Below are positions 15,076-42,136 of a stretch of 64,000 nt of DNA, piece after piece. Origin of the DNA: Klebsormidium nitens (taxonomy: Eukaryota > Plantae > Klebsormidiophyceae); contig DF236952.1 in the NCBI GenBank assembly GCA_000708835.1, forward strand, positions 459,623 to 523,622. Reading direction: 5' to 3'. Numbering within the stretch: the first letter of the stretch is position 1; every line of letters starts with the position of its first letter. A program made the position numbers and the translations under genes. Under the pieces are notes generated by a model that was not told the origin of the DNA, ran no database searches, and saw nothing but the letters and a program-made list of their open reading frames with translations.

Positions 15076-18000
15076 TCAATCAAAATCGTCCTCAATCTGG
15101 CTATGCTCTGATCGGCTGGTGCTATCCTCCTGCTGTTGCCTCCACCGCCGGTAGCGTACCCCCAGCTTATCATAAGCAACTGGATGGTTCCACACGTTTG
15201 CCCCTCGAATCATCCGGTCCTGCTGGCCCTCTACCAACCGGAGGTCCTCCGATAACACCTGCAGTTGAGTAGCAAGTGGTCAGCACTCTAACAAAATGGC
15301 CGACTTTGTGAAGCAATCAAGAATAAAGACAACAGCTGACACTAGAAGAATGGATGAATGCAACCAGTCGAGAACAGACAGAACAAAGTTCAAGTCGAGT
15401 CGCAGTTGACGACTCTAAACGTTTGGATTACTGTCTGGTCCAAGAGCAATAACAGGGATTGACCGTCAACCTGCTCAGACCAAAAACCGGAAGCCCGTGC
15501 TCACAGCATTGGGTCGATTTACCAGCTTATTAAGGGCACGGTACTACGCCAAAGAGCAAAATCCCTGCACCCCATGCGCCTCCAAAACCAAGCTACTCAA
15601 AGTACGTTTCTGTTTGGAAGGACGTCATGGGACATGTCCCACACGGAGACTCGATGCCCGGGATTCAACTTCCGCAGTCCCTCCCGATAGCCATGTAGGC
15701 CGGTGTTCAAGCGACGGGCAGTCGATGCACGGATATCGCTCCAAGCCACATGGGGTAGACGGCCCCCTGAAACCAATAAAAGTGTGTGCTCACCTGGTTG
15801 GCCATGTACTCCCACAGCTTGTGGATGAAGGGCACGTACTTCGCCCACCAGGCAAAGTCGAGCGACATGCGGTACAGTAGCCGGGTCGTGCCCGTCTTGG
15901 ACGGTACACACACATGGAGTTGGTGCAAGTGGTTAGGGCAGTCCTGCAAGGGGAGGCGGTGTCAATAAGGATGTATACGAAGGACCTCGGTTGGTGATCT
16001 GAGTTATTTGTAACAGACGAGGCATTTTGCTTCAGAAAGAAGAAGTCGGTTTTAGCATGGATGTGCGGACTTGTAGTTCGGGAAACACAATTGCAGTCTA
16101 CACCAGCCTTGGCGCACAACAAAACTGCATGAACCGAGATAGGAGCCTTCCCTTGCATAAAATCTGGATCCCCTCATTAAAACAACCAAACATCACCTGT
16201 TCGTCAACGCCTGATATCGAACGATTAACCCCTTATGAGATGAAGGTACTCAAATCTTTTTTGGGTCTACAACTCAATGATGGCACCAAGACCCGTAGAC
16301 CTGCCAGAAAAACCGCGAAAGGCAAGTACCGTACTGCTACGTAATTTCGGCAAAAATTAAATAATTATGTGCCCTGCCGAATTCCGCCGAGAAATGTTTT
16401 GGAGCGATAATGGTCGATAATGGTATGTTTTAGCAGGTAACTCTAGGTCTGCCGAAAAGATAGAAAGTTTCATAATTAATTTTTCGGCGTCGAAGTTGCC
16501 GAAATCAAATAGCAGTACGGTACTTTCAAATTCGAGCACACAGGACTGTGGCTCACTTTCGTGTTAGTGCCGGAGAGCTTCCCAGGCTGCGAGAGCCCAA
16601 TAGTGGAGAACACCATGCAGGGGGGGCGGAACTCCATGTCGATCGGATAGGGGTCCCAGAAACCGCTCAAAGCGGCAGCGGCAGCGGTCTTGAATTTGAC
16701 GGAACTGCAGTCAGAAGAGGAGGCACGACAGAAAGTTAGCACAGTTGGAGGGGTTGTAACTCTCCCTGTCTGGTTGAACAGCAATAAACTCGGCCTCTCA
16801 AACTCGGCCTCTCAGACAAATGGCAATCTGAGCGATCCAAGAACCTTGAGACCCCCGGAGCAATCGGTTCACCGTTTGGGAAGAGCCGTACTTGCATTAC
16901 AATCCTTCTCTCAGCGCGCTTTGTTTGCGATACTGGTCCTTCCTTTATCTAGGGCCAGTCAACGAATTACCCCATCTGAGGACCAGACTGTCACACTATC
17001 AACAGAAGTTATGCAGGCCTTAAGCGGGCGTTACATAAGAACCAAGGTCAACGTATGTAATCAAAGAAGACTTTCGAATAAACACCCAGTTTGAAGATCG
17101 GTTTGAATCGTCCAGGTTGGGATATACCAATCGAAACGAACTTCAACAGCACATCTGAGACGGTCCATCTTGTCCGAGTCTGGAATTCGGCAAGGGGTTT
17201 GCACTTACTTGGGCACTGGCCAGCCCTTGGCGAAAGTGGTGGTGTGGGTGAAGGGGGCGTGCGCCAGGTCCAGCAGGTTCTCCACGAGCAAGCCGTGCTC
17301 AACGGGGACCTCTAGAGTGATCTGCAATCACAACAGCAGGCTGACGTCAGTAGCTGTTCTCAGGGATTGAACAAGCGCAGAGTACTGCAAACCTGCTTCG
17401 GATGGGACAGTGGCGAGCGGGTCTTTATGGCTTTTCGCATTGTGTGGACGACTTTGCTGTCATATTGCAAACACATACCAGCAAGGACTTGGGGTATGCT
17501 CTTGCACAGGAAACGGCTTTTCAGAACATGGTCGGCAGAATGCTCCGAGGGGCTGTTCGCACCTTCCTTTCAAAGGAGCAAGGAGCACATCAATACCTGC
17601 CCACACCTTTTCCACATGTAACAATGACACAACTCGTCAAAGCATGAACAAGAATGATTGCGAGAGAGAAACGGGAGAAACCCTTACCTGTGCATGGATG
17701 GTGTAACCAGAAGGGGGGCTCAGGTCAGGGAGGGTGGCCTCCGGCACTTTGTCCCCGGGCCAGATCCAGATCATGCCGTCTTGCTCAACGCAAGGGAGGG
17801 CGCGGACAGAGGTGGGGGCCTGGACTGTGGAGGGCATGTGGGTGCACTCGCCGGAAGTGGTGTACTCCCAACCTGCAGAAAGGGTTCCAGAACAGGGTCA
17901 GGAATTTGGTTATAGAGGGTTCTGAGTCGGTTCTTTGACTTCAGGACTCTTCGGGGCTTCCATTGGGAAAGTGCAGGTCAACCACGCAGCGGACAGATTA

Positions 18001-21000
18001 GAGGTTGCTTTAACAGTCCCAGGAAAAATAACACGGAACAAATCCAACCTTTGATCAAACTTTTGATACTCACAAAGGGGGCCACTACGATGACCAACCT
18101 TGCAGCAAAACGATGGGAACCTGATCCACAACCGAGACAGCATCATTCCAAACGAAAGATTCGTAGAAGCCTCCTCACCATGGTATGGACATTGCACTTT
18201 CCCATCTACGAGCGCCCCCAAGGACAGGGGGCAGGCTCGGTGCGCGCATTCATCCCTGATACACCCCGCTTTTCCGTCCTGATCTCGGAAGATGACCCAA
18301 GGCTCGTTGAAACAGTCTATTGGTACCTGTAAATGGACAAACAAAGGCTGCTGAGAAAAGTGATCATAAGGAAAAGGCGAGTTTTGTTGAGCTCTACGTC
18401 CGTACTGTATAAGAAAGGGGCTCTTTGCTCGGCCTTGGCCCCAGATGCAGAGGCGCTGCATGCTTCTTGCCAAAATCTGTCGACATGAATGTACATGACG
18501 CAGAATTCAAAAAGATGAGGCCTGCAACTCTCCAAGGCGATAAGGTTTTCTACCGCCACATATCCGCCTCTGGTGTGACGAGCTCACCATGGTCTTACTG
18601 TCCACATTCTCAGAGAAAGCCACCGGGTACCAGAAGTTTTTCAGCGCTGGGGAAACCTTCGGCTTTCCCGACACATCGAGAAAACTCTTCTGCCCTGCTC
18701 GCCGTTGCCGCCGAGCCACCTGCTCCGACAAAAAGCGAGGCGTGAGTTGGCCGACCAATAGTAGTCAGTTGCCTTGCAAACTTCGCTATACTCTGATTGA
18801 CATGGTCCTGCATCCATAGTCCTGCATGAGGCCATAAGGATTTGCCTCCAGGTGGATCTGAGTAAGAAAAGGCTGCACTCCAGTCCATGTCAAAGACATC
18901 TAGTTCGTGGCGCCTATGGTCCGCATCTGAATTCCAAGCAGCCATCAGCTGCTAACCGCCAGTCCGACCCTGCATGGATCAGACGAGATGTCGACGGCGG
19001 GCAGCGACAAATCAGCTCAAACCGCAGTTCCATCACCAGACATATGCGTACATATTTCTCAATTCACTCGGCATCTTTTCAGTCCGAAGACTCGGGCTGA
19101 AACGGTTGTCAAAAGCCGACAGTGACAAAAGCTTCCCGAGCGCACCTCCTGCTGAACCTCCTCTGCAATCTCCCTAGCCTCCGGTTGCGTGCGGGGCAGC
19201 TCTTGCGTCTGCGCCTGTGACCGCTGCTGGGGGGGCAACGTCTCCATCAGCTTGTCCTCCATATCCGTGAGTTTGCTAAGGGTGTGCTCGACCCTCGCCT
19301 CCGATACATGTAGCTGGCACCAACAAAAAACCCAGGTTAGTATTAACCTTCCTCCCAAATCTGGTTAATCTCACTGCCAAGCGTCAATGACCTAGCTTTC
19401 AACTGTGCCAGATGCACTCACCTAAAGCAAGTCCTAGCCCCAGCAAATGGAACGATAACCTGGTCTGGACGGGCGAATTGCTTGCTCTCAATAAGAAAGC
19501 CCTCACGCACACAACAATGTGGCAATATCATGCAATTTGTGCTGACATGTCATCACTATGCTCTGAATACAGCTGCAATTCTGAGCACGGCAAGAGGCGT
19601 TAATGTTCAGCTGCAACAACAGCCGCAAATGCAGATTATGAAATCGGTCCGACGCCGACTCTTCTATCATGAGTAGGGAACCTCAGAAATGGTACCCTCT
19701 CTCTGCAACCAGTGAATCAAGTGAAACCCAAGCCCCCATGCTCAATAGAACAATGCCCCCAAGGATTGGCCCAGTTCGGATGCAAGGGTTGTTGAATCTT
19801 GGACACACACCAATCTGCGCGGGTACTGTTAAACCCATGCTCAGCAGACGAGATAAGCCATCTTGTGCTCTGCGTCAATCTTGGCCCACACACTCTGCAC
19901 AGACTCCCCGAACCAGCTCCTATAAGCTGTTGGGCCAGTGCAGGCAGAATCGGTTTGCAGTTTACAACCTTTGACATTTTCCCAACGCTTGTCTCCTCAC
20001 CTGTGCATGGGCCTTTGACAGCTCATCTTGCAGCGCAGCAAGCTGGTTCTTCAGAGTTGACACCGACTTGTGCTCACGAGCGACCGGGTTGAGTGTCTCT
20101 ACCACCTGCAGAGTGGGGCCAATTCGCTTTTCATAAAATAGTCCATGTGTCCCAAGGTGCAATGATTTGCTCTAATCCCTATGCTTGTGAAAACCAACGG
20201 ACCAAATCCCCCTCAGACATCGGAGTGTACCCTCCCACAAGAAAGCTGAGGGAGCTTGGTTGACTCATTGCCGGAAGGTAGCTCAAGAGGAGTGCCACGA
20301 TCCAGGGCAGCATCTCTCACAGGTTGGCTTTTTCTACTCCATTTTCAACCATTAACCATTGGTTTGGCAAGGAACTGAGGCACGTCGGTTCTGTCTGATC
20401 CCAAGCGAGCTCCAAGCCACGTAAGAGTGACCTATGTGCTTAAAGTACAGGGCAGTCTTCTCACATTCAGACCCCAAGCGTCGGGTCACCATGTAGGTAG
20501 TAGGTTTCCAGCTCCTGTGGAGCTGGCAACAACTCTTGAAAGCCTATAATCAACTATTCATCAATCAAAAGCGGTTGGCATCAGACCCCGCACATTGACA
20601 TGCCCAAGGAGCTAGCACTGAGCCAGATCTGTGTCCTTTGCCAAACTTGTAAGATTTCAGGATACTTTGTAGTGATGCATTTGTCTACCAGCATTGTGCA
20701 CTTCCAAGCAACTTCCATCACAAAATTCCAGGCGGGAAGGTGAATACCAACAGGCGGATACCGCATGCCAGAGACCACAATTGGGATCCGCTTCTACTAA
20801 GGGAGCTGGCGTTACTTTGAGTTCAGCTTTGACATGTGCAGCTCAGACATTGAAGTGTCGGCGCATGTTTTCAAGGCTTCAATCTGCAGTGCATGCGCAG
20901 GGGAGTGCAAGATTCGATCTAATTAATGCTCTGTTGGGAGCCACATGCTGCCGTCCATGGCACTCTGGCTTCCTATCTTAGTGAATTGGCCAGAGTCGCT

Positions 21001-21747
21001 CCACCCGCACTTGAATTAGCTGGCCCAGTATCTCTCTTACAAGCGCAAACCCCATTGCGTCAAACCAACCTTCTGTTTGTAAACCAGAGGATATGTGCAG
21101 ATGTAATGAGGGCAGACAAGGCAGGCAGGAAAGCCAGCAACAGCTGAAAGATACAAATGTGCTACAAGCCAAGCTCCGAGTTCAACGGAGTCTACATGGC
21201 TGACATGACATGCCATATGCCAAAACCAGGCGCGATAAAAAAGTCAGCACACCCTCTAGAGAAGCATACCTTCTGCAAAGGCATATGACAACAAAAACCT
21301 GCTGACCTTGTCATGAGCTGCTTTTATTGCATACACGTCCTGCCTCGCCCGCCAGTCCAGGTATCGCACGTCATTCAGCACGACATCCCAGTTATTCTTG
21401 AGCCTGCCACCCTGCTCTCTTGGGTCCGGGACCTGAAAGAGCTCCTCCCACCCCCCATCGTCCGGCCCATTCCGTGACTGCCTAGGTGATATATGCACAC
21501 ATTGTACAGCCGATCGCTTGCCGCTCTCCCTGTCTAGTGGAACCCTCTGCCCTGCAAACTCTCCTAAGCTGACTGTACCCTGCTTGCGCGCCTTCCTTCC
21601 TACTGGTCTCACGCTCTTCACAAGAGCCCTCACAGCCACCCCATGGCTAGAAGGATCGGTCAAGGCCCGGCAGCTCGCCCGTGCATGCAGTCCCCCAATA
21701 GGACCCTTTGCCAAACCCTCAACGCTTACTGCCGCTCCTACCATCAT
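15076..21747 (-). CDS. CAO: Chlorophyllide a oxygenase (chlorophyll b synthase), ~10 exons
   Basis: [12 protein letters not shown]|[35 protein letters not shown]|[17 protein letters not shown]. Rieske [11 protein letters not shown]...CPYHG|WEY. Mononuclear-iron [60 protein letters not shown]. Confidence 0.97.
16329..16520. mobile_element. MITE-like element (~192 bp) in a CAO intron, with CCGTA termini and flanking TA (Tc1/mariner/pogo-type target duplication)
   Basis: Left gTA|CCGTACTGCTACGTAATTTCGGCAA versus reverse complement of the right end TTGCCGAAATCAAATAGCAGTACGG|TAc (CCGTACTGCTATTTGATTTCGGCAA): ~22/25 identical. AT-rich non-coding interior with further internal symmetry. Confidence 0.75.
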
Positions 21748-23731: not shown

Positions 23732-26700
23732 TCATCGAACAAAAGGTAGCAGGAAGTACTCCGCATAGAATAACTGCAGTTGGGAGAGTAGCGTCAGTAA
23801 AAGTACTGACCAACACACAAACCTTTGTAGGACAAAGGACGGCCTTTCATCAGGATATGACGAAGGCGGGTACAGCAAGAAGGAGCAAGTCCGATGTCAT
23901 CGGAAAGACTGTAACCAAGTGGTGAAGTGTCAGGCGCGAGAACGGCCAAAGAAGCGCACGAAGGGCTTACGGTTATTGGAAAGCATGGTTGGGGGAAGAG
24001 TACGCCCCGCGAAAGAAGCACAATCAGAGCTAACGAACGACCACAGAAGAGAGGGAAAGATGGACCGAGCAGAACGAAAGGCCGGAGCGGGAAACAAAAG
24101 TGAGAACGGCTGACGGAAGCAAAAGTCGACGGATAATGTGGATCGAGCCAAGCTGGACAAGCGACGGCTCGGACAGACCGAATGACAGGCAAAAACAAAG
24201 AGAGAAGAATAAATGGGACCGGAGGAAGAACTGGCAAAGGACGGAACTAGAGACGAGAACGGCCTACCTTCCACACAAACATGTAGAAGCCGACAATGGA
24301 CGCCTTCTTGGCGAAGTCCACGTGGCGGGCCCTATGCCACAGGATGCCCCCAAGCGCCGCATGCGCGCCAACTGTCACCACCTTGCTCCACAGCCGGGAG
24401 CACGTGAAGCCCACTCCGATTGCGCCCACGTATGCAGCGCCCAGAAGGCTGACGCAGATCCAAAACATCTGGGGGGAAAGGACGAGGGAAGAGATCATTT
24501 TAGAAATAGGCGCCAGTCGGTTGTAACTTGAAACAATCCCAATCCCCTGTGCCTATCCGCTTTCTATGAAACATCTCGTTTAGGGACTGCGGTAGCGGAG
24601 TCTTATCAAGGAAGCTCGCACCCCGATTTGGGGCAGATATTGTTTCCACCGGAACGACTCAAGCGGGTCGGATAAATGATTGTGGGGGTTTTATGCTCAA
24701 TTAACTCGTGCTCCAATGCAGAAGGACAAGTTGGCAAGCCCATTCTAAACCTCGACTCCTTCGGAAAGCACGCATCCAAGAATGAACCGCCGAGAGCCGC
24801 TCGTCGACGAGGAACAAGACAGAAGTGGTTGAATCTTCGAAGTCTCGCGTTTTGCGATTTACCATGTTGGTGCGCAACAGCGCAGAAGAGAAAAGCAGAA
24901 AAGCAGCACACGCAGCATAAGCTGACACCGGAAATATCCCAGCAGAGAGCCATGGATCTCGAAGAGAGGGAAAAGCGAGCGCGCCATTACCTTTTGCTGC
25001 CCCATCCGCACGGTAAAGGACTGAATGTTGAATTGCCGGTCGCCCTCTAGATCAGGAATGTCCTGTAACAACGGACAATTCGCTTAGCTACAATCGTATG
25101 CTGCAGAAATTTCTGAGTTCCTGTACTGCATCCTGAAATCCCGCAAGGGCAAGAAAAACCCCAAACTCAAAAGGTGCACAGATTTCTGTAAACGCAGAGA
25201 AGCTTCGCTTTCAGCTTCCTCTTTGCTCTCTTTGCGTTTAACGTCACAGGGACGCTTTTGCAATCCAGGCGCAGATGCGACCAGCCAGTCCCGAATGCCA
25301 CTAAAGGCTGTTTACCTCTGGTGCAATATCGCAATATTGTTCTAACCCAAGTCTGAGAAGCTGACATGTGGAGACTTCCAAGGAACAGCTACTGGCTCGC
25401 CACAACACACATGGCGCACTAATATTCTGGGGGCCATTCACACTGCCTCCGACTCCTCACCTTGCAGAAGGCGATGACGAGGGAGAATACGCTCATGAAG
25501 GCGGTGCCGAAGAGGACGGGCCGACTCAGCACCGCAGTGCGCTTGAGGACGGACACCTGGACAGACGACCAACTTTTGTCCCGTCTCTAGTTGTTCCGCA
25601 AGCCTTAAAATGGAAGAGGGTGGAACCGGGCTCGTAGACAGGTCGCTTGACTGCCCACCTCCCGCAATCTACGACCTTTTGCCATCGACAAAGCTTAGCA
25701 GGCGAGAATCGGACGGGGAACACGCCTGTCATTTTTGCCCTTCTGATGAACCTTGTGATTGAGAGTACGTTCTCGCAGCTTTGAGAGGCCGTCTCAAACA
25801 AGTCATACCACGAATACACAAGTCGTGCGCTCTCGCTTGGGTTGAGTAAACATACTTGTGTAAGCGACTCATGCGCTCCAGTCATCAAACCTTGTTAAGA
25901 AACCTTTTGGTGCATTATTTGAAGGTCGAAAGAAAGGGATGGGGCCGGAATGGGAGAAAGCTGTGCAAATCAGAGCAGTGCAAAGCGTGCTTAGCGCACA
26001 ATGGAAAACGGTCAAAGAAGACTCTGTGCACGACGAAGTTGGGCCCCTGACCTCCCCAGGAGACTCATAGCCCCTTGGAAGCAGCGTCACTAACGACTAG
26101 TCGGACGAGTATGGTTAGAGAGCAGTCACCCTTGGGTTACGGCCTGGTCACCTGCTCTTGTCAACGTAGACTCACGCTGATTGCAACCTACAAACGAGCC
26201 GAGAGCGCAAGTTTCATAATTCGCAGGCTTGCTTGACCACTTGGTTTCCATGCTTAACTGGTACGTTTGTTAATCGTAGTCAACTGGCTTAACTAAAGGC
26301 CGGGTTAGACCACGGTTTGGGCATGGTTACCTGCATGTGGAGGTAGAACCCGATTTGGACGAGGACCGCTCGGACCGCGAAGATGCACCCGGCAGCGAGG
26401 ATGGGGTACTTCTTCCACCGCAAGAAGGGGAGCTGCACCCGAAACACGACGACTCAATATGCATAATATGCTAAAAGCGGCCTTCAAAAGTTTAGAAGGT
26501 CTGAGCTCAACTTCAGTTTCTCATAATCCGACGAGGACCTGAGATAGTTCAGGTCTCGTCGTACAACTATGGCGAAAGAGCTTTGAAAGGCGGATCACAA
26601 GGAAGACCAGATCCGCGCACTCGCTTTCATTACGGTACGCAGACCTCAGCAGCAGTCTGATGAATGGTGAATGTACTCGTCTGTTTCGCAGTTCAGAGAA

Positions 26701-29700
26701 TTGATACTCGGTGGAAAAAGGCCTCTAGTAATCCAGGTCGGTAAGCAAAACTGAGGTGTGCCAAAAGAGACCGACTGAGCAAATTCTTCTCTGAGTTCAC
26801 TGGCGCACCAGCATACCAGAAACTCTGCTCAGTTTTAGAACCCCGACAGGTACCTGATTAGAACGGCCCAGCAAGTTCTTAAGTAAGTGACCTTTCAGGA
26901 GTCGCATCTCATTTTGCAGAATTGCTAACAAGCTAACTGACGCAGAAAGTGAACCAAGACAAGTCGTTCGCTGTTCTCGTAAAGTCGAACCGAACCGGAG
27001 CCGCCTTCGAGCGAGGCAAGTCCGGCCGCAGCCCAGAAAAACGTGAACGAAATTCTGCAAAGATTGCGCCCCCGCAACGCTCTTGCAGTCCCTCTTCCTA
27101 GAGCATCAAATATCACGCTCACCAAATCTCACGCTATTCTTAGGCAAAACTTGCATGCGTACGTTCCTGACTTATCCACGCAATGACGTGGTTCTTCAAA
27201 CCCAGATCCCCGGCCCTCTGACTGCAGATCACTCCGGCGGTTTCTTAAAGAAGACAACCACATCACACTCACGTCGGTCGAGTATGCAAAGCCGAGCAGC
27301 AGGCTCAGCGAGAGCGTCCAGAGCAGCGGCTGAGACCCGACTGCCAGCCCAATGAGCAGACTCGCGATAGCGGATGCGGCGACCAGGCCCACGCCCTGCG
27401 CCACTGAAAATTCGCCGGACGCGAGCGGGAGCGTCGGCTTGTTGATCTGCGCGACAAAAGAGCGTGATGAAGCGGTTTGGAGCTACTTCCGACGTGCGAG
27501 ATCGCCACAAGACCGAGAAACTCGATTGAAAACATGTAAATATATTCGTCGACGGTTGTTGGACGCTTCTCAGCTGTACGGTGCGCATTATGTACGCGAG
27601 CGAGTGTGCGGACATCCGGAGTGGGTGCCAACAATTCAGGAAGAAATCATCTGAGAAGTCCACCTCGAAGGAGCACACCCCTCGAGACTTCTACCAAAGG
27701 CCTATCAAATGCGACAAGCCCATGCTGGAAACAAATGTCAATGTTATCCATAGTCCTGAGGGCTCCGTTGGCAGGTCAAACCGTCAAACGAGTAAGAAAG
27801 GAAACCCACTCATCGCGTGATAAGGGGCGCGTTGGAAGGTTTCACCTTAAGAACCGGTCCCAGAGGAGGCAGTCTAAGACCCAGGATTGTACGATAGACG
27901 TTCGTAACATGAAACACAATAGGATCCCTATCCAATCCCTCCTTCGTGATGACCTCTCTTCCAAGAGTTATAACCACAGGAACGAGGGAGCCTTACAGGT
28001 AATGGTCATCGACCAACACGTCAAGACCTCAGAAGATCTAGGGTCAAGCTTCTTTCCAGGAATTGCACCCACCTTATCGATCTCGATATCGTAGACTTGG
28101 TTGAGCCCCACGATCGCCACATTCGCTTGCAGGGCCGGAATGAGAGCCTGGAGACATGGGTAAAAGAAACGTCAGAACGAACACAAGGTAAATCAGCAAG
28201 TCAGCCCCAGAAGAGGAGAGCAACAGGCGTTGTAGGATCTTCAATGAGGGTAGACTAGATCGGTGTTTGTAGAAGCAACCGCGACAGGCAAAATGCATAT
28301 CGGAAGTGATACCACTGATCGATTGGGGCCTGTGCTGACACTCGACGGCTTGCAGTCGCGTGCTTCTTTCTTGTATCCTTTCAGAACGCCGAACTTAGAA
28401 GCACTTTGTCGATCGTGGCCTAATATTGCTCGCTTCCTGACCATGCATCGTTCTCAAGTCCCGACTCATACAAAAAGTAAGCCGCTGTAACAGCGAAAAA
28501 ATCGATTGCACGTTTACATACGAGCTTTTGGAACTTTCTATCATTTACCACAACCTGTTCTACATCACTTGACCTCCCGTGTACCCCTGGATGATAGCAG
28601 ATTCCAACCCTCGAAGTACAGACGGGGTAGAAAAGCGAAAAGAGGCAACGATCGAAGCTCTCACTGAGATGGGTGTTATCAACCAGCCGACAAGTCCGCA
28701 GCAGCTTCGAAGTTCTATCATAAACATAAACAGCGCTGAACGAGCCGAAGGAAGCTGTACGTTTTCATCCTGATACTCAAAGATCAACACAGAAATCTAC
28801 AGTACTCGGTATCTTTTGAAAGCCTCGGGCGTACCTGTAGAATTCCGATGAATGCCTTGTGACTGAAGTCGGCGGGACTGGTCATCGCGAGCAGGGACAC
28901 CGAGACGATGCTGAGAGACTGGGGCAACAGGCAAAGGGTGTCAACTCGATGCTTCTCGAGGTTGGGATGTAGTGCACTCTTTGCTTCGATGCAGGACTTT
29001 GCTTGTTACCATTGATCGGGCATAGTTAGTACCTCGTAGGCAAGTTGCAGACTACCATATTTACTAGGGACTTGATAAGTTGCCCTTTTCCGTATCAACT
29101 TCTCTGATGTCATTCTCGAGAGTGCTTGAACAAGCTAGATCCTTGACATTGGGCTCGTCCATTCACCCAGCAAGGATGGCTCTGCGAAAATCTTCGGATT
29201 CTGGTTCCTGTTCCTTCCACACAATGAGCACAGTCCAACAGGACCCAATCCCATTGTGAAATTGTCTAGCGGTGACTCTTGCGAATGGCCCTCCCAGGCA
29301 ACGAGAAGCTTCACACGTTGCCTGGTGATCTGAGTCGAGGATGAAGCATGAGCAAAGGACACCAAAACGACCCGCTAAGGAGCTAGTTGTCTGCTTGCTT
29401 GTTACTGAGACAAACAGCTGAGAACAGATGGATCAGACGTCTCTCTGCTGCCGAGCCACCTTGCTCTTCTCGGGAAAAACTGACTTATTTGTTTTTCCAA
29501 TTCTCCATTCTCCTGCATACCGCATTCTCCTGAATACCGCTATCCCGATACCCCGCAAACCGAGGCAGTCAGTGGACTTTCTGAAGGTGGGGTTCCACTC
29601 GCTTGGGGTTGAAAAAGAGTTGAGTATCCAAGCTTGAAACGACGTCTCACCGTGCCAATGATTGTATGGGGTCTCGCAAAGCGCACAAGAGCGTCCGAGA

Positions 29701-31612
29701 ATGCAGTCACCTCGTCCCATGCTCTTTGTAGCCCAACCTGCGTGTACAATGGGCATCAATGAGCCCCCAAAAGGCTTGCTGAAAGTCCTGCAACATTTCC
29801 TGGTTTCCCGCTTACTACTTCAGGTCAAAATGGGCAGTTTCTCACTTCTGAGCGCACCTGCTGAGACGCGATCGCAACCTTCCCTTTCCTCATTCTCCTG
29901 ACTCAATGTCGGGAAGAAGGTATGAGCAAAGTAAAGTCCTGAACAGGGATAGTAATCCTTATTGATAAAGTGGGTATGGAGCAGTCTCGTCCAAGAGTTG
30001 ACGTTCAGGTTAAGGCTTACTAGTCCTAACGCTTATTATTCCCACTGGAGGATCACGAGTAGAGTCTTCACCTTCTCGGACCCGATAAGAGCCTCCCCAT
30101 CTTCTACGTTGAGGTGCCCGGCCGTCGCTTGCGCAACGCCCGTTCTCGCCCGCTTGGCCCGCTGCTGCCGCTGCTTTTGCAGGGGAGTGTCCAGCTTCTC
30201 GCTGACGTCAGCATCGTCTCCCCCGTCGATTGCCAGGGACGACGCGCGAGGCCCCTGGCGGTGGCGCTCATTGGGAGAGCGGCGCTCTGCAGGTTGGAGT
30301 GCTTGTCAGTGGAGGATTTGGGATCAACCAGAAAGTGTTTGAATCTCCAGCGTCTCATCTCCAGATCAGGAATACTCCTCCGGCGGCTGACTTCGAAAAA
30401 GTTCAAAACTTCCTGATCCACATGATGCCTCTACATGGTTGTGAACTGATCCAGAGGACCCCTCATGAGCTGCACTTTGATCCGGAGGACGCGTCATCTG
30501 CCGACAAAATCCAAGCGAACAACTCGTGAAACTTTCTGAGATGTAGGACATGTACAACCACGTCGGGAAGTAGTGAGAAAGGCCAGGAGAGCGGATGAGC
30601 ATGCAGCATTCCGAGCGGACAATAAAGCGAGAGAGAGAAGCCTCGGAACATATTCATTGGCAACCCGGGTGGTGCGTCTTGTGCACTATCCTTGACACCA
30701 CTTGTCAGATGCCAGTCTCTGGTTGAGGAAGAGTTGGCAAACATAGAAAAAGTGATGGGAGAAATTGTGAGGTTTGGGATCCACTGGGCAGCGCTAGGAT
30801 GTGCAAAATGCGTCAGCTTTGAAGCGATTGCGATGATATCAGCCCGACAAATCAGCAATGTGCATGGGTTTCTATGTCTCAAGAAAAGCATCCCTGTGTG
30901 TTGTCTCCATAAAATCTCTGCTTTGATCCAACCTCCGCAGTTGATCAGCTAGCAACATTCAGACAAGTCTGCTGGTTAATGTGGACGAATGCAGGAGAAG
31001 CGGTTTCTCACAGCAAAAGCTACATGCAATTTACAATCACCTCATACATTTATTTGTCAAGATCAGCAAGTTGACCAAGGCTTCCGTGATTCAACACTTG
31101 CAAACACGGCAATGCATGCAGCATTGGAAAATGTAATCCTAGAAAGCCATTGTCTTGCCTTTCTAGGCCTCATCTCTTGTTCATGCACTGGCAGACTAAA
31201 AAGCACCGGCACCATAAAGAACGACCTAGACAATTGTGCAAATTCCAACTTAGCGCACACTTTAACCAAAACACAATCATACCAAACAGAGCACTCAATA
31301 CCCCTGACAAAACTGTGAGTTCGCTTCAAACGAAACGCAAATCTGGGAAAGCTGCTGTTTACCTGCTTCCTTCGATCCATGCAGCCGCGCCGGAAAGCTC
31401 CTCACTCCTAGATCTCCAGACAAAAACCTCCTTCTCCCGTTCCCATGCGGACAGCAATCGCTGATCGCAGCTGATTTCCACACAGCAGTCACCGATTGCT
31501 GCTTTGCATCGATCGGGAGGGCTTGCCTGGGACTATTTGACGAATTTTGCAAAGACCGCGCTGCAGAAAGGAGTGGTTGAGTGCCCCCATGGCAGGCGGT
31601 GAGGGCACCCAT
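23732..31612 (-). CDS. VTE2: Homogentisate phytyltransferase (UbiA family). Exons include 31612-31363, 30286-30072, 29737-29651, ~28925-28835, ~28135-28075, ~27450-27275, ~26430-26330, ~25570-25465, ~25070-24980, ~24465-24270, ~23773-23732
   Basis: DALVRFARPHTIIGT, NVAIVGLNQVYDIEIDK|INKPTLPLASGEFS, LPFLRWKKYPILAAGCIFAVRA, DIPDLEGDRQFNIQSFTVRMGQQKV|FWIC, FYMFVWK|LFYAEYFLLPFVR*. The C-terminal motifs resemble HPT1/VTE2 more than HST/PDS2, judged from recalled sequences. Exon 1 looks like a transit peptide and splices in frame. Confidence 0.9.
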
Positions 31613-32499
31613 GCGTGGTCCGGAAAGGCTGATCTAAAACTCGGTTGAGTAGAACCTTTTTCTTCTTGTGCTGCCACAAATCGAATCACACAATCGCATT
31701 CGATTCAGAAGGTTGAACCGGAATGATGTACTGGCATAAACGCTCCCAGCAAATTGGGTTCAGGGTGCAAGGATATGGATGCTGAAGTGTGCAGCTTTCA
31801 ATCTGTGCATGTACAGGGTGTCTGATGATCAACCACGGCTGAGAGGACTGCGCGTCGAGGAAGCAACAGACGCCCCAGCTCGGCAAAAGCAGGCTAGCCA
31901 CTGTAGCTTTCAAGTTTCCTTCGAGTTCAGGCAGAGCTAGACTTGAAGTTGAAGTTGAAAGTTGAAACCTGATTGAAAAGCTGAAGTGTGCGTCTGCCCA
32001 GAAAAGCATTTTGATTGGCCGGCGAACCCAGCTTTTTGGAAGTATCCCGTCCACGTGACACATTCGTGGCTTTACATTGGTAGGAAGCTGGGGCCATTTA
32101 ATGCACCATGATGCCAGGTGGCAGCTTGAACAGTTGGAACCTGGACCTTTTCGCGCGCATTCTCACGCTTTGCCCCGAGCAATTTATCCCGTCTGGTGTC
32201 AATGATGAACACCAACGTTCATTACGTTTACAGGAGACACACAGACGAAGCAGAGCCGCCCGGGACTTAGCAAGGGGTTAGCGGGGGTTTCTGCCAGCGC
32301 ATGCTGGCAGTGGAAGAAACATCATTCTTTCAGCATGCCCGGGCCCTCGTGTGCTTCATCCGTCACCGTTCTCTTCAGCAGCATTTTGTTGTCCAGATTG
32401 AGTTTTGTCTGAAAGTTGTCGAGAATCAGTTGCAGCGTCTGAGGAAGAATCCGTTTTCAGACCTTGCTGAGGGCTTGCTGTTCAGGTGGGCAAAAGTCA
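31613..32499. promoter_or_regulatory. 887-bp divergent intergenic region (candidate bidirectional promoter) between VTE2 and VTE4
   Basis: ATGs point away from each other at 31612 (-) and 32500 (+). Central G-box CACGTG at 32052-32057, ATTGG (reverse CCAAT) at ~32013 and ~32077, and a TTGAAG-type run at ~31943-31980. Confidence 0.65.
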
Positions 32500-35400
32500 A
32501 TGGCATCAGCAAAAGCCCTCCTGTGCAGGAGCTCCTTCCAACCGCTTTCTCTGACTGAAAGCTGCAGCAGCCTGTCTCTAGAACCCAAAAGCATTCAGTG
32601 CAGACTGCCACTCCCAGTCTCCAAGTCATTTCGACATAGATCTAAGGATTCCTTTGGTTCCTCTAGCAGCCTGACGTTCGGCAGGCAAGCACGGGTAATC
32701 TGCGCAGTGAGCACGGTTCCTGAGAGGACCGTGCCTGAGTTGAATGAGGGGATCGCGGGGTTCTATGATGAGTCGTCAGGCGTTTGGGAGGAGATCTGGG
32801 GCGAGCACATGCACCATGGATACTATCCCAAGGGTAAGCTGGTCTGGCTGCTCGAGGCTGCTCTGTCCTTCTGATCCTGGTTGCCCATCTGCTCAGATTT
32901 TTGGCATTGAGCAGGCAGTAATTTCTGTGTGCTCTGTTTCAGTAGAATCTGGACTTTGACACAAATCTCACTGGCCGGGGTTCCTGCGATCACTAACCAA
33001 CAATCGGCGCCTGGAATTACAAACGGCACAGCTAGAGGTTGCCGGACAAATTAGCAAAGTGCTTTCGAAAGGAGGTGCCTCCCTGGTCGATATCATGGAT
33101 AGGTATTTCCTCATCCTGACATAAGTCAATGCCAGCATCAAAAGGAAGATCACTGAGAGTTCTCAGAACTGGTGTTTCCCACCTGATCTCAAGGAGGATG
33201 CGAGCATGTTGGGTTTCAAAAGCTGACAGCAGTACCCTTGTGGAGAAGGCTGATTGATGGTCGCACAAAGTCAAACGCAACAGAAGCAGGGGATGGTAAT
33301 CCATTTGGCTATGCTGGCATCGTTGGCACCCAAGGTCTTGCTCAAAGCTTTTTTTTGCGCTGGTGCAGGAGAGAAGAAGGATCACAGGGAGGCGCAGATT
33401 GACATGATTGAGGAGACCCTCAAGTGGGCGGGTGCAACAGGTGAGCCTTGGAAGCTGCAGTTTTCCTCGAGCCTCTCCTTTTCGTTGTCTCTCCTCCCTT
33501 TTAAGTGCAGCCAAGCTGACTTTGATCAAGAGTTAGGTGACAATCAGACCTAGGGGATGGGATAAGGAGGGGGATTGGAGGGGTAAGGTTGCTGAGCAGT
33601 CACTTTTGGGGGTTAGGAGTACCTGCTTTGCTGCCACATCAATGATCCTCAATTTTGTGAATCTGATCGTGGCATTGATCAAGCCTGACCCAGTCAACGC
33701 CAAGTATCCAACCTTAAGCCCCTTCTTCCAACTACTGGTCTTATCGGTGTGTCAAACAGAGGTCAGACACATGGAAAACGAGCAGCACCTTCCGAAAGAA
33801 CCCAGGCGCATAGGCAGTCACCATTCATGAATGTTTATCGAGACTTCTTTGGAAACTTGCCAACTCTGGTATCTCCAAGCTTCCAAGCCTCAAACAATGA
33901 TGCAACGATGATGAGATAGGTTTCCCAATGTCCAAAATACATGTGTGAGGAAGGCCCGTCGCTGTCTTCAGTTTCAACTGCGACCATGTGGTTCACGTCC
34001 GAATGCTTCTGCACAGATGCGGAGGGAGTCTCAGCAGGTGGAAGATTTGCTTACGCTGTTCGGAAAGCCCTTTATCACAAGAGGTGATGAACTGAGTGAA
34101 GAGTCCTCCTCTGCTTTCTCTCGCAGGCGCAGGAACCCCCGCTCCCAAAACCGTCGTGGACGTCGGGTGCGGCATCGGCGGAAGCTCACGCTATTTATCG
34201 CGGAAGTTTGGGGCAAAGGTTACGGGAATCACCTTGAGCCCGGTGCAGGCTGCCAGGGCCGGAGCGCTTGCTCGGCAACAAGGGCTTGCCGACAAGGTAA
34301 GAACCACTGTTCGCTTCTGGCTTCAAGAAAAGACAAGAAGGACTTGCAAGGATCGGCACGAATTAACACTCACGTCTGTGTAATATTCTATCAGGAACCC
34401 TGACGTTGCAACCGAGCTGTTGCAGGCATTGTCGAACTCGGGTAGGACCGGGAATTTTTTCGGTCGTCAGGAAAAAGCAGAAACACTCTCTGAAAGGAGA
34501 GCTTCTGTTGAGTTCCCCTCTGGAGGCCGTTAGTTGCCTAGATTGCCCCTTTTGCCCGCGTTACAGTATGTCCGGTTCTTGTTCCACTTAGCTCCGACCA
34601 GACGTCGCATTTCTTCCTTAAGTATTCCCTCTCGATGTAACGACCCCTCCCTTTGCTTGCTGGTAGGAAGGTGGATCGGTTCGCTTGACGGACGGGACTG
34701 CAAAGAGCATGACCTTGCATTTTCATGGCAAGACTCTCCCCCGCTGAATTCCAATGGTAACACGTACTTCTTTCAACCATGTAGTATCGCTTATCCCCTG
34801 CTCTTATTCAACGCGTGCAGGAGTCGTTTTGAATGTCGCAATACAAGCCCTCAACCTCTCGAATATGGATCTCAGTCTTTTCGATAGGGGAACGGTCTCT
34901 CCTGCTGACTTAAGCTCGGTCCAACAGCACTGTCTCTCGGCGCTCAAAAATGAGGACAACAAGCCTCGTGTTAGCAGCTTGGCTAATTTGCGATTGGGCC
35001 CGCTTTGCAGGTGTCGTTCCAGGTAGCCGACGCATTGAACCAGCCATTCGACGACGGACAGTTCGACCTCGTGTGGTCCATGGAAAGTGGGGAACACATG
35101 CCCGACAAAACGAAGGTGAGAGGCGAAAACCCCTGTGCAAACCAGTTAAAAGGCCACCCGTCGTTCCGCAGCTTCCAGCGGATTGGACCTTTGCATCTCA
35201 TGCAGAAAGTAATAGCTTTGATGGACAACTTCACTCAGCCGATCCAGCCTTCCGCACTCTTGTTCCCAGGTCAAGAATTCTCAGCCGCTCGCTCTTACCG
35301 TTCGCATTTCATGAGTTCAGCACTTCGTTCCCTCGCAACTTTGAGAGCATACGCGTCAGATGATAAGGAAAGCCTGTGCCTGCTCTCTACATCTGACGTC

Positions 35401-38087
35401 ACCCGCTGCATAAGTCCTGACTGTGACGTCTTCCGCCCCCCGCAGTTCGTGAACGAGCTCATACGTGTTGCCGCGCCAGGGGGCCGCATCATCATTGTGA
35501 CGTGGTGCCACCGGGACCTGGCCCCAGGGGAGACGGGGCTCCAATCGGACGAGTTGGTAAGTACAGAGGGATCCCTTTCTGATGCCCGTACTGATTTTTG
35601 AATTCGACCCCCAGCCGGACGAGCTGGTAAGTTTCCAGTTGAACAGAGGGATTGCCCCGCGGGCCCGGATCGAACCGTGATGTAGACGCTCCAACTGGAC
35701 GAGCTGGTAAGTCGCCACGTGTTTCAGAGGGATCCCCCTCCAGTCGCTTCAAATGAATAGTAGATGAGGTTTCGATCTTCAGCGTCGCTCTGCGTTATGA
35801 GGTCCCAGAGGCGACAGGTGCTCTCTAAGGCGACAGAGCAGCAGATATGCAGCTTTGCAAGACCGCCGATGGTTTGCACGTTGCAAGAACGTGGAGGTCA
35901 TCGAACCCTGTAGCGCAGTTTCGGAGCATGCATGATCGTCAGAGTGTGCTCAGCAACGGGATCCGTTCTATCTTCGCGCAGGACCTTTTGGCCAAGATCT
36001 GCGATGCGTACTACCTCCCGGCCTGGTGCTCCGCTGCGGACTACATCCGAATTGCGAAGGCGGCGGGGTTGCAGGTAAAGGACTGAGTTTGATCGCACCT
36101 GTCCTTACTTTTCGTCGGCGTCGACCGGTGTGACAGCGCATCTGCAGTCCCTCGAACCAATGAGACTGCTTCAATCGATCACGTAAATCTGGAAGACAGA
36201 CTTGGTGTGCCTTTTAGCTGGAGAACATAAGACTACCTGCATGTACGTGGACCGGAGGATGGAAGCTGGAAACCCGAGCATTGTTGGTCGAAGCAAAGTC
36301 TTAAAGCTGCTTCATCTCAACGGCCCTTCAATTCCGGCTTCTTCTCTTTTTGCCACGACACCTCCCGTGACACGTCGCCTCCCATGGTAGCCTTCTCTTC
36401 TTCGGTCATTTGTTCTCGTTGGGCGGTTGTTGCTACGCCGGAAGGGGACGTCGTTTCTGTTCCCGGTCGAAACGGCCGGATGACGTCAGCAGTTCGTGCG
36501 ACCATAACGTCCTCGACCGACGTGCTAGTAGATTGTTTTTGTAAAGTCGTTTCGCTTCGTGTACGGCTCCTGGGCCGACTTTTTCTGACCCTTTGAACGT
36601 GTCTCACTAGAGCTATAGACTTCAGACGGACAGGATGGGTCGCAAATCTTTCAAGCGGATGTAGCACGTCCCTTATTGCACTGATCTTTGCGGTTTGTAT
36701 TCCTGCTCTTCCTATTCTCTTCTTTCTTGCCTCTGCTTCCTTCTTCGGCTCTTACGGATCTTCAAGCTCAACTGTCTGGCCCACGCCACCGACTCTCTCA
36801 ATTGCTTTTTTGCAGACCCGCCTGACACAGTTTCAAAGTCTCATCTCTTTATTCCGCCACCAACACGTTCTCGTTCCTTGCAGGCCAGCCTGACATTCCT
36901 CTGTTTCTCCCTCTTAGAATACTCAGTTGCCCCTAGTGACCCGCTACCGCCATACTCTTTTGTTGACTGACGAACATGATTTGAGTCGTAGTTCAAGAAA
37001 GCCGCCGTCAACATTCTCCTTCTTCCGGAACATCCTGTGAAGTGACTCATTCTAGACAGCCCGGTCACCAACAGTGTTTCGTTCGTTGCAGAATGTCATC
37101 TCCGATGATTGGTCGGAGCGCGTGACGCCCTTCTGGCCGGCCGTCATGGCGTCTGCTCTCAGCTGGAGGGGGCTACTGGGGCTGGCAAAGTCGGGTGAGA
37201 TGTCAAATGCCCTCCGCCGTCCGTCTCTTTCTCGTCTCTCTTCCTTGCTTTTGACTTTTCTTAACATTCTCTCTCTCATCGTTGTTGGTCGACTTGACCG
37301 CCTGTGCTTTCTTCTTTCTTCGTCATTCATTTCCAGTGTGCTCTAAAACCTCTTCTTCAGGGCTATCCTAAATCTTTCGTCCAAGTTGCTTCCATTCTGT
37401 CTTTCTGAGCGCTGCCTCCTCTGTCGTAATCTGATTGGACTTCTCCGGAGCGGTCTTTGTATCTCCACACGCTCGAAATGTCCTTGAATTTGCTCTGCTG
37501 GTTGTAGCGACTGCTGCCTTGCTTCTGTGGCCCAGAGGTTTCAATGTTGCACGCATCGAAGGTAGATGAGCGCACGTGGATCAGAAGGCAGCTTTTAGAA
37601 AGAGATTGTGCCTTCGCGTTTGGCTCGGAAACAACGGCGAGGGATTGCCCTTGCGACCACGGATGGCGGCCCCAGCTTATGGCCCCTTACTCGTGGGATT
37701 AGTCGGTAGCAAAAGTATTTCGCAGCGTGTTGCCGAGTCCAAGTCTCGGAGCGTCGGGCTCCGTAGACCTCGCCAGATACCGAAGCGCCAAACTGTCTCT
37801 GTCTCGCCTTTTGTTTCCTCCATTTCTCGCTCTCTTACTTTCGCGTAAGAAGGATTGTGAGAACCGCCATGCAATCTATTTGATGCTACCTACTACGAAG
37901 AGCCTATCAAGCATGATAATAAAGTTTTTTCAGTGGTAGTATGCGTGTAATCTGACATCTCCTGCAACGCTTGCCTGCAGGTTGGACGACGATCAAGGGG
38001 GCCTTTGCAATGGCGCTGATGATTCAGGGCTTCAGCCGTGGTCTGATCAAGTTCGCGTTGATCTCCGGTACGAAGGCTAGTCAATAA
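32500..38087 (+). CDS. VTE4: Gamma-tocopherol methyltransferase. Exons ~32500-32833, 33368-33440, 34127-34296, 35011-35115, 35445-35556, 35982-36075, 37090-37194, 37981-38087
   Basis: Transit-like N-terminus. LNEGIAGFYDESSGVWEEIWGEHMHHGYY, HREAQIDMIEETLKWA, SAM motif VVDVGCGIGGSSRYL, FDLVWSMESGEHMPDK, RVAAPGGRIIIVTWCHRDL, ICDAYYLPAWCS, DWSERVTPFWPAV, GWTTIKGAFAMALMIQGF..GLIKFALISGTK. Confidence 0.97.
35541..35740 (+). repeat. Three tandem copies of the VTE4 exon-5 end plus 5' splice site
   Basis: CCA(A/G)..GGACGAG(T/C)TG|GTAAGT with the GT at 35557, 35627 and 35707. Each is followed by a CAGAGGGAT motif. Confidence 0.85.
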
Positions 38088-39175: not shown

Positions 39176-40324
39176 CTACTCAACCCAACTCGCATTGTAC
39201 CATAGGGTAGACCCCTCGTGAAAGCCTTCCGAGTCTTCCACAAACCCAAGCGACTGCAACAAGGGCGGGATCTCGTCCCTCCTCTTCCCGCTCATCTCCA
39301 CCATAAGCACATGCAACTCAATCTTAGACCAGTCCATCGACTCCAGTATCAGCATCTCCGCTCCCTCGACATCCAGGCTGAAGAAGTCGATCCGCGTCAC
39401 GCCCGCGAGGTTGATGTACTTGCCGAGCGGCCCGCACGGCACGAGCACGGAACCATTCCCGTGCTCACCCGCAAAGTTGTCCAAGAAGTGCTCGGTCATT
39501 TGGGACCGGTCGCCGGACACCGCCGACCCCCGCGCCGGGAAGGAAAGCATGCCCCCGTCCTCCGCGCACCCGGCCATCCAAAGCCGGCGCGTGCCCTCTC
39601 GGTTGCGGTTCTTTTTCAGAGTGAAGAAATTGTCCGGTTGGCCTTCTACCATGACTCCGCTCCACCCGAGACACTGCTCGTAAAAGAGGCTGTTGCTGAA
39701 ACTGATCCCGTCCAACCCCCCCATCTCAAAGAAGACGCCGTCGCGCTTGATCGCGGGCTTGCTAAAGAACTTGGTGAACACGTGCTTGTCTTCTCCAAAC
39801 TGGCTCCCACCGGGCCCGGCCAAACAGTCCGGGAAGGTGATGCCGGGAAACCGGCGCGCCACGTTCTGGGGGTCCCGCACGACCTCCGCATAGAGCTCCG
39901 CAGTTTTCACAAGGCTGGAATGCACGACTTCCAGGGACTTAGCCATCAGCGCGCGCTCGCCCTCAATCCTTGCCTGCAACTCTAGCAGCTTTTGCACCTT
40001 GGCCCGTCTGCTCGTCTTTGCACTCTGTAGAGCGGTCACCTCCAAAGCTGTCCCCAGGGTCGTCTTACACCGCATGTCAGGTGAATACGCGACCTGGCTG
40101 TATACGCTGATTTCTGGAGTGACCCAACGAGTGAATCCGATGCAAACTAGGATGACCAGGCAAAGGGCCGGCAGAGTCCAAATCTGTTTGGATGAGGAGA
40201 AGGCCCGCCCCCAGCGAGAAGGAGAACGGGGATGGGAGCGCTCCATTGAATCTGCGTTGCGTAATGCCAGGATTGCTGAGGGAGCCGGTGAATGCTGGCC
40301 TGACCCTTTATAAACGATGCTCAC
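39176..40324 (-). CDS. FkbM-family (Methyltransf_21, Star-like) SAM-dependent methyltransferase with an N-terminal TM anchor; single exon, 382 aa (start could be a later Met)
   Basis: Uninterrupted GC-rich ORF. TM segment LPALCLVILVCIGF, motif I FFEMGGLDGISFSNS, WSGVMVEGQP, and IDFFSLDVEGAEMLILESMDW..IELHVLMVE typical of FkbM proteins. Confidence 0.88.
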   Translation of the reverse strand: MSIVYKGSGQHSPAPSAILALRNADSMERSHPRSPSRWGRAFSSSKQIWTLPALCLVILVCIGFTRWVTPEISVYSQVAYSPDMRCKTTLGTALEVTALQSAKTSRRAKVQKLLELQARIEGERALMAKSLEVVHSSLVKTAELYAEVVRDPQNVARRFPGITFPDCLAGPGGSQFGEDKHVFTKFFSKPAIKRDGVFFEMGGLDGISFSNSLFYEQCLGWSGVMVEGQPDNFFTLKKNRNREGTRRLWMAGCAEDGGMLSFPARGSAVSGDRSQMTEHFLDNFAGEHGNGSVLVPCGPLGKYINLAGVTRIDFFSLDVEGAEMLILESMDWSKIELHVLMVEMSGKRRDEIPPLLQSLGFVEDSEGFHEGSTLWYNASWVE

Positions 40325-42136
40325 TAACTTAACGGATCTGATACAAGAGTGTCAATAGAATCTTGCTAACCATACCACTACTCTATAGATAACGGGCTGA
40401 TAGGCAAGACGGTGAGCTTGTCACAGGTGGTTCAGCAGTGAAGACAAAGCTGCAGACTGCTTCCAATGTGCAGTAGCCACGATCCAGAAGATCAGTGGGT
40501 TTCCATTGGCAGTACCCCAATGCTTGCCCGTTTGCTGATATACTAATTCTTGCTTAGGAACCAGAAAAAGACCCAGAAATCACAGAAGCGGTGTGCACAA
40601 CATCCAGCTCGCGGGCCTGCAAGCATCGACAGTTGGCAATTGAACCAACGTGACCCCTGATCGATGCCGCGCTCTCTAAGTTGAACTTGAAGCCTAGCTT
40701 TCTCTCTTGCATAAAAGACGTATCCTCGCCTGAAGTGGCCAGCCTTTTATGGATTCAGCAGCTGCTACTACAGTGCTAGGAGAGCCAGGATGAGGCTGCG
40801 GCGCGCAGGCAGCTGTGCGTCACTGTGAACAGTCACTGTCGGTGTTACCGGTACAATACGTGCACTCAATTGTACACAGATGTACAAGGAAAAGGTGTCT
40901 ATCCGACTCGCCGATCATAGGCACCGGGGTCCGGGGCCCGGGGCGGCCGCGGGGTGTAAAATTGCGGCGCGTCAAATATTGCAATGATTGTGCGCCGAAA
41001 CCTCGGTGCCAATAATTGGTCCATACCGTACCTCCACAATCAGGTACTCGCGTCCTGGCAGTGGAAGTGAAGTTGATCGATGGACCTCTACCGGGATTCC
41101 CGTGAACCAAAGGAGATTGCTCTAGAGCTTTTGCAAATTTGCGGCATGCAACATGTGCAAGGCCTTTGGAATTCGTTCTAGTATCTGATTTCGGTATTTT
41201 TGTGCTTCGCCCACGAAAATTGATTGATGAAACGCGGGCCTTCGCAGAACTTATGCGTTACCCACCAAAGAGAGCCATCATAGTTAATCCGCGCCTTAGA
41301 ATAGTGATTGCATAATACCTACTTAATAATAATAGTACTGACAATTTCAGTAGGTAACCCGATTTGCTGACGTTTTGCTGCGTTTTGCCCTGAACATTTT
41401 GCACATTATCCTACGGAATGAGTCGGAATGACCCATTAGGCTATCAGCAGCAGGCCGCCTCAGCCACTCATGTCAGTACCGCCGTACCGGTACCTACCAC
41501 TGCATGATGTACAACGTGCGCTCCTTGAACTTTCCTGCTGCCGAGGGGTGACGTTGCAGATCGCTGTCGACACACCAGCGCCGCATTCATGAGCAAACAG
41601 GAAGCTCCAGTCTCCTCCTCCTACCTACCGCGGTACTCGAAAGCTCTTCAAATGCCTCGACGGCCCTGAGGCTGTAGGCCTTTTATGAGCTGTCCTCTCA
41701 TAGAGTGAGGCGGGCTTTTTTGCTCGCTTTGATCGTTGAGCTGTTGTGCATAAAGTTGTAAATAAGAAGCACGTTTCGCCGCCTGCTGATTCAGAGCAAA
41801 CCAAGAGCCGTGTTGCGACAGAACGCTCTCGTGGCTTCCACCCGGCGCAGGAGTCGTCCATCACAGCAGCCTACACAACATGGGTGCAAACGCCCTGTGT
41901 GGACGTCAGATCTAGCACCAGACTGCCCTCCACTCTAAGGACCTTGGCTCTCAATAGAGATCTGCAACAACGGAGTTGCAGAAACAGAAAGCATTCTGGC
42001 ATCTGGCGCGACTTAGGACGAATGAACCTAGCTACTGCACTGGCAAGGTATCCGGTTCGGGGGTCCATTTAGCATTTCCCTTGTTGGAGATTGAATCGGA
42101 TATCCAGACTTACCAACGTTCGCAAGCAGAAAGACC

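Follow-up and report, generated by a model that had tools for sequence, protein, structure and literature searches.

Head-to-head tocopherol genes with a conserved block midway between them in the alga Klebsormidium nitens

Homogentisate phytyltransferase (HPT, VTE2) catalyzes the first committed step of tocopherol synthesis and gamma-tocopherol methyltransferase (gamma-TMT or TMT, VTE4) the last, and in Arabidopsis their genes lie on different chromosomes. Here we describe a 64,000-nucleotide stretch of the genome of Klebsormidium nitens, a streptophyte alga near the base of the land-plant lineage (assembly GCA_000708835.1, contig DF236952.1, positions 459,623 to 523,622 of the forward strand; the whole stretch is called the window below, and coordinates count from its first letter), in which an HPT-type and a gamma-TMT-type gene stand head-to-head with 887 bp between their start codons. 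The same arrangement is found in a Klebsormidium-like relative, and a 189-bp non-coding block in the middle of the spacer is conserved between the two. We favor, with moderate confidence, the reading that the genes form a lineage-limited bidirectional pair of one pathway with a conserved shared promoter core.

The gene pair and the block between the genes

The features of the locus are as follows.

23732 to 31925, minus strand: HPT (VTE2) gene, 11 coding exons, from spliced contigs and homology-guided GT..AG models
31612-31363, 30286-30070, 29735-29651, 28918-28835, minus strand: HPT coding exons 1 to 4
28147-28073, 27446-27273, 26432-26331, 25556 (or 25541)-25461, minus strand: HPT coding exons 5 to 8
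25062-24991, 24468-24268, 23773-23732, minus strand: HPT coding exons 9 to 11
31926 to 32322: spacer without contig cover in four runs, between the two transcript 5' ends
31993 to 32181: conserved non-coding block, 189 bp, candidate shared promoter core, aligned with 1394-1578 of the relative's contig (L174)
32009 to 32019, minus strand: CCAAT box, GCCAATCAAAA, with ATTGG at 32014-32018; 11 of 11 bases identical in the relative
32052 to 32057: G-box, CACGTG, at the center of the spacer
32076 to 32080, minus strand: second CCAAT box, ACCAAT, kept in the relative
32111 to 32121: E-box 11-mer, ATGCCAGGTGG, with CAGGTG at 32115-32120; 11 of 11 bases identical in the relative
32323 to 38087, plus strand: gamma-TMT (VTE4) gene, 8 coding exons, from spliced contigs and homology
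32500-32832, 33368-33437, 34124-34294, 35009-35113, plus strand: gamma-TMT coding exons 1 to 4
35444-35556, 35982-36074, 37092-37194, 37981-38087, plus strand: gamma-TMT coding exons 5 to 8

The HPT coding sequence runs on the minus strand from the ATG at 31612 to a stop ending at 23732, and that of gamma-TMT on the plus strand from the ATG at 32500 to a stop ending at 38087. The locus matches the public sequence of strain NIES-2285, in which 27,881 nt of scaffold DF236952.1 are 100% identical to 13732-41612 of the window. Both genes are expressed and spliced, as seen in contigs from four runs, one from each of four studies, which we presume to be RNA from their exon-only coverage and their spliced GT..AG joints. 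In the HPT gene these contigs set exons 1 to 3 and the start of exon 4 (exon 1 transcribed from 31363 to about 31925, exon 2 at 30070-30286, exon 3 at 29651-29735 and the next from 28918), the remainder of the model being guided by homology, and the 5' untranslated region extends to at least 31899-31925, where the contigs end. In the gamma-TMT gene they set exons 1 to 5 (exon 1 transcribed from about 32323-32339 to 32832, exon 5 starting at 35444), and homology gave exons 5 to 8. In all four runs, the 5' ends of the contigs of the two genes (31899-31925 for HPT and 32323-32339 for TMT) lie about 400 bp apart, which, judged from contig ends, is within the 1 kb that defines the spacing of bidirectional pairs.

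A preliminary description of this DNA, made from its letters alone, had placed divergent start codons at 31612 and 32500, and these positions are exact by our gene models and by the GenBank proteins of the two genes (P0309 and P0426). The physical linkage that it proposed is likewise borne out by the head-to-head order and by the presence of both genes in spliced, presumed-RNA contigs. Its spacer of about 0.9 kb stands as the distance from ATG to ATG, but only about 400 bp of it is untranscribed.

The leaders of both genes contain short upstream reading frames or start codons. There are three short upstream ATGs (31810, 31737 and 31699) in the HPT 5' untranslated region, and the gamma-TMT leader has a single 25-codon upstream open reading frame (32335-32412), which is within the longest contig of run X1; the contigs of the other three runs begin at or after it.

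The same pair was found on L174, a 38.5-kb Joint Genome Institute metagenome contig to which a protein fragment from one exon, with 80% identity to HPT exon 10, had led; a search of metagenomes for related loci from Klebsormidium relatives had returned bacterial homologues only. The exons of L174 are about 80% identical to those of the window, with values of 61 to 88% at the DNA level (73 to 88% apart from HPT exon 1), and the introns cannot be aligned, so that its source is, by these identities, a distinct and fairly distant Klebsormidium-like alga. L174 carries a complete HPT gene on the plus strand (2046-11038) and, divergent from it, the first two TMT exons (1210-821 and 183-109). The order is head-to-head as in K. 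nitens, with 835 bp from ATG to ATG. The surroundings of the pair differ on one flank. The gene located 3' of HPT on L174 (13214-15290) is a homologue of a window gene at 60938-62564 and takes the place of the Rieske/PaO gene found there in K. nitens, which indicates that the DNA here was rearranged without separating HPT from TMT. In K. nitens, the gene at 60938-62564 lies about 23 kb away, beyond TMT.

Over the roughly 10 kb of locus shared with L174, the block at 31993-32181 is the sole non-exonic match. The two sequences agree at 129 of 182 ungapped positions, and the local alignment score of 50 compares with 12.5 +/- 1.4 (maximum 19) in 300 dinucleotide shuffles, corresponding to a z of about 27. 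Besides the boxes listed above, several further short runs within the block are identical between the window and L174. The block sits wholly inside the stretch that no contig covers, halfway from one 5' end to the other. It is single-copy within the window, the spacer at 31926-32322 has no Rfam match and the HPT-TMT spacer contains no notable repeat; we rejected a repeat or a hidden RNA gene as explanations of the block on the basis of its single copy and the lack of an Rfam match.

Identity and descent of the two genes

The identification of the minus-strand UbiA gene as an HPT-type orthologue is supported by several lines of sequence comparison, and a preference for phytyl diphosphate is predicted from them. 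Searching with UbiA homologues by tblastn located the conserved HPT exons at 23735-29740 on the minus strand, and the spliced model gives a protein of 460 amino acids that is 99% identical to GenBank P0309, where it is named "homogenitisate phytyltransferase [Klebsormidium nitens]". Pfam PF01040 (UbiA) is on record for the gene product and also matches one exon, and the model contains the two Asp-rich motifs, as NQVYDIEID (NQxxDxxxD) and KDIPDLEGD (KDxxDxxGD). On the HPT equivalog model NF009525 of NCBIfam, P0309 scores 317.6 bits against a cut-off of 226, with the next family at 61 bits. The K. nitens protein is 52 to 62% identical to proteins named HPT1 or VTE2-1, values comparable to the 60% reported between the HPTs of olive and Arabidopsis (PMC11911349). 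The PDB holds no structure of either HPT or homogentisate solanesyltransferase (HST).

The only difference between our HPT model and P0309 consists of five residues at the splice acceptor of exon 8, where two candidate acceptors, 25541 and 25556, lie 15 nt apart and give proteins of 460 and 465 amino acids. The annotated acceptor at 25556 is favored because the extra residues, VSVLK, are conserved in the relative. The N terminus of the protein is unusually long, with about 170 amino acids ahead of the conserved core, and exon 2 (30070-30286) encodes a highly charged stretch whose identity to the relative's sequence falls to about 48%.

For the plus-strand methyltransferase, an assignment as gamma-TMT orthologue is supported, and methylation of gamma- and delta-tocopherol is its predicted activity. 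With plant gamma-TMTs as queries, tblastn located eight coding exons at 32500-38087 on the plus strand, and the resulting model of 364 amino acids is identical to GenBank P0426, which is annotated there only as an S-adenosylmethionine methyltransferase. Matches to Methyltransf_11, Methyltransf_25 and CMAS on the exons and on the whole product correspond to a class I domain of such methyltransferases. The protein is 59 to 68% identical to proteins from Perilla, Oryza, Hibiscus (VTE4), Selaginella and Camelina. A methyltransferase tree, in which the cyanobacterial MPBQ methyltransferase paralogue (Sll0418 type) has no labeled member, places it as the sister of the land-plant clade, with a support of 100/99 for the eukaryotic clade. 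The HPT-type and gamma-TMT-type identities proposed in the preliminary description are thus upheld by the family score, the identities and the methyltransferase tree.

Both genes are old nuclear genes of vertical descent. By the approximate positions that tblastn match boundaries give, HPT shares intron positions with Closterium, Marchantia and Physcomitrium, and TMT shares them with Monoraphidium and Selaginella. A recent transfer of the pair from bacteria was considered and rejected since both proteins branch with eukaryotic orthologues and share their intron positions.

A proposed shared control region and its alternatives

The arrangement kept in the relative and the conserved 189-bp block make a shared control region the more plausible reading of the spacer, and we infer that the block is a promoter that would serve both genes and keep them co-regulated. 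Each gene would be transcribed outward from start sites about 400 bp apart, and a core of about 190 bp would have persisted midway as introns and the remaining spacer sequence diverged past alignment. NF-Y-type CCAAT factors, together with a bHLH or bZIP factor, would probably bind this common core, which may act as a bidirectional promoter core that drives or tunes both genes and so would couple entry into the pathway to the final methylation. Bidirectional promoters of this kind are known from yeast GAL1-GAL10, two genes of one pathway, and from divergent histone pairs, where the genes likewise face outward across less than 1 kb and the spacer holds a compact, conserved control region; in K. 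nitens, by contrast, the shared regulation is deduced from conservation.

A number of points weigh against a shared promoter core. The block could serve one gene only or be two abutting promoters, and the contig ends only approximate the transcription start sites. Eukaryotic genomes hold many head-to-head pairs spaced by less than 1 kb, and a short spacer offers rearrangements little to hit; that the pair persists in one relative therefore argues only weakly for selection on linkage. Contig depth, which we considered and rejected as a proxy for co-expression of HPT and TMT, is no usable measure of their expression. The central G-box and the CCAAT boxes pointed out in the preliminary description are present, with one CACGTG at nearly the exact center of the spacer and ATTGG, the reverse of CCAAT, at 31753, 32014 and 32076, but neither motif exceeds chance (the window has 14 CACGTG where shuffles predict 14.1, and the spacer has 3 CCAAT where 1.9 are expected). 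Motif enrichment was for that reason rejected as promoter evidence. The G-box reads CATGTG in the relative and is not conserved, whereas two of the CCAAT boxes are.

The distribution of the pair also counts against this reading, as the pair is missing in all eight other eukaryotes that we examined, a sample of chlorophytes, a zygnematophyte, bryophytes, a lycophyte and a diatom, without Chlorokybus, Mesostigma, Chara, a red alga or a glaucophyte. TMT is not found within 10 kb on either side of HPT in Closterium, Bryopsis, Marchantia and Physcomitrium, nor is HPT within 10 kb on either side of TMT in Myrmecia bisecta, Selaginella, Monoraphidium and the diatom Skeletonema. These absences were established by tblastn for Closterium, Bryopsis, Myrmecia and Selaginella, and from called genes and Pfam families for Marchantia, Monoraphidium, Skeletonema and Physcomitrium. 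Since Closterium and two bryophytes are among the species that lack it, the pair is a feature of its lineage and not a streptophyte-wide module. Of the synteny that the preliminary description had suggested comparing across green plants, we find the adjacency in one Klebsormidium-like relative but not in Closterium, the two bryophytes, the chlorophytes or the others.

Such a distribution would also be expected if the adjacency were neutral, a rearrangement in an ancestral genome of the Klebsormidium lineage having joined the genes by chance and their short spacer having kept them together. The block would then be the promoter of one gene or a set of two independent promoters, with no functional coupling. 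We rate this account as less likely than a shared core but still a real possibility. It agrees with the chance-level motif counts as well as with the absences. Furthermore, a genome holds very many pathway pairs, so that by our own estimate for about 16,000 genes, the number reportedly given in the K. nitens genome paper, some neighbors from the same pathway will arise by chance. On the other hand, we estimate the chance of any immediate-neighbor pair among the roughly seven core genes of this pathway at about 0.3%, the pair has outlived at least one nearby rearrangement, and the conservation forms one compact block midway between the 5' ends and not beside one of them.

A further possibility is suggested by bacteria. 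Among 24 cyanobacterial HPT loci, 18 have a gene for a TMT-like methyltransferase, 50 to 55% identical to K. nitens TMT, immediately upstream of HPT and co-oriented with it, and the same co-directional order occurs in at least 11 Bacteroidota loci, all in a sample biased by its having been found through peptide patterns from the algal protein. The order from TMT to HPT is seen in loci of Nostoc, Calothrix, Cylindrospermum, Aulosira, Microcoleus and Phormidium (L086-L128), with gaps of 3 to about 600 nt, the shortest in Aulosira (L094, 9101-10879). In the methyltransferase tree, the sister clade of eukaryotic gamma-TMT consists of these neighboring cyanobacterial methyltransferases. The same two enzyme families are adjacent in both settings, and the algal proteins have their closest prokaryotic relatives in the bacterial ones. 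The pair in K. nitens might then be a relic of an operon whose TMT and HPT genes moved together from the plastid ancestor to the nucleus and stayed linked in Klebsormidium alone among the lineages sampled, with one gene inverted. We consider this quite improbable. The cyanobacterial genes are co-directional, free of introns, 3 to 600 bp apart and presumably on one transcript, while the algal genes are divergent, rich in introns and separately transcribed, and the absence of the pair in eight eukaryotes would call for repeated loss together with more than 1 billion years of retention in a single lineage.

That the UbiA gene is instead an HST of plastoquinone synthesis or another aromatic prenyltransferase, leaving no tocopherol module at all, is very hard to credit: the K. 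nitens protein falls in a weakly resolved basal algal grade, inside the HPT group and outside the bacterial clade, of a UbiA tree that contains no bona fide HST and so does not settle HPT against HST, but the NF009525 score is above its cut-off, and the identity to named HPT1/VTE2-1 proteins is 52 to 62%. Moreover, wherever one of the best 150 cluster representatives or best 120 profile hits has a name, it is that of an HPT1, a barley-type HGGT or an HPT-derived flavonoid or coumarin prenyltransferase. No true HST appeared among the 150 cluster representatives, the 30 clusters with names or the 120 profile hits. Two Salix proteins, the only hits labeled "solanesyltransferase", were considered as HST and rejected, as they are about 70% identical to angiosperm HPT1 and are HPT1 orthologues; the label is the name of the PANTHER family PTHR43009, which is also given for HPTs in a published HPT study (PMC10617047).

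The preliminary description went on to call the pair a metabolic mini-cluster, a term for which two genes fall short. Plant metabolic gene clusters such as those for avenacin, thalianol and DIMBOA comprise at least three genes, make specialized metabolites and are often co-repressed at the chromatin level. The K. nitens pair resembles them in linking non-homologous genes of one pathway in a eukaryote, but it consists of two genes of a conserved pathway whose neighbors have no demonstrated role in it, and it lacks the third adjacent, non-homologous gene of the pathway that the usual definition of a cluster would require. Nothing that we found ties the pair to terrestrialization, the other wider relevance that had been suggested. 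As to its being previously undescribed, we found no description of an HPT-TMT pairing in the literature, but both genes are already in the public annotation, HPT by name. What is new, as far as we have searched, is that the two genes are paired, that a relative keeps them so and that a block of their spacer is conserved.

Should the shared promoter core prove true, the locus would provide a compact and testable case in which the two ends of a conserved plastid pathway are wired to one element of about 190 bp, of use in studies of tocopherol regulation and in the construction of small bidirectional expression cassettes for algae. The bacterial operons may matter more, since they bear on how often operon partners re-link in nuclear genomes and raise the question of whether some Bacteroidota make tocopherol-like compounds.

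Neighboring genes and bacterial loci

The gene 3' of HPT in the window (15076-21747, minus strand) encodes a 590-amino-acid oxygenase of the Rieske/VanA_C/PaO family, according to the Pfam matches on record. Look-ups in the Atlas and the PDB yielded no specific name for it; exon peptides such as HLHQLHVC suggest that it may be a chlorophyllide a oxygenase. On the other side, tail-to-tail with TMT, lies a gene for an FkbM-type methyltransferase (Methyltransf_21, 306 amino acids as annotated; 39176-40373, minus strand), which to our knowledge has no connection to tocopherol synthesis. There is no further tocopherol gene within 10 kb of the pair.

We found no paper describing a TMT-HPT operon. 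In a pan-genome study, HPT, the cyclase and HPPD were reported to co-occur but never to lie close together in the strains examined, and a TMT-HPT pairing is not mentioned (PMC5862535). The cyanobacterial loci described above and the operons of Synechocystis have in common that tocopherol genes are paired. In Synechocystis, the partners differ from those in K. nitens, and the two operons are slr1736-slr1737 (HPT and tocopherol cyclase) and slr0089-slr0090 (gamma-TMT and HPPD).

In Saprospiraceae and Chitinophagales, the pair is part of a co-directional run of four genes for a geranylgeranyl reductase, a UbiE-type methyltransferase, a TMT-like methyltransferase and an HPT-like protein, some of whose ends overlap. 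This run is found in the cultured Phaeodactylibacter luteus KCTC 42180 (L126, 6819-10924) and at L106 (195-4053), as well as at L108, L110, L114, L115, L118, L120 and L123, and Pfam matches revealed no cyclase or HPPD near it. The composition of the run suggests that these non-photosynthetic Bacteroidota may make a methylated phytyl-quinol or a tocopherol-like lipid. In P. luteus, a gene for HMG-CoA synthase lies upstream of the run and is divergent from it.

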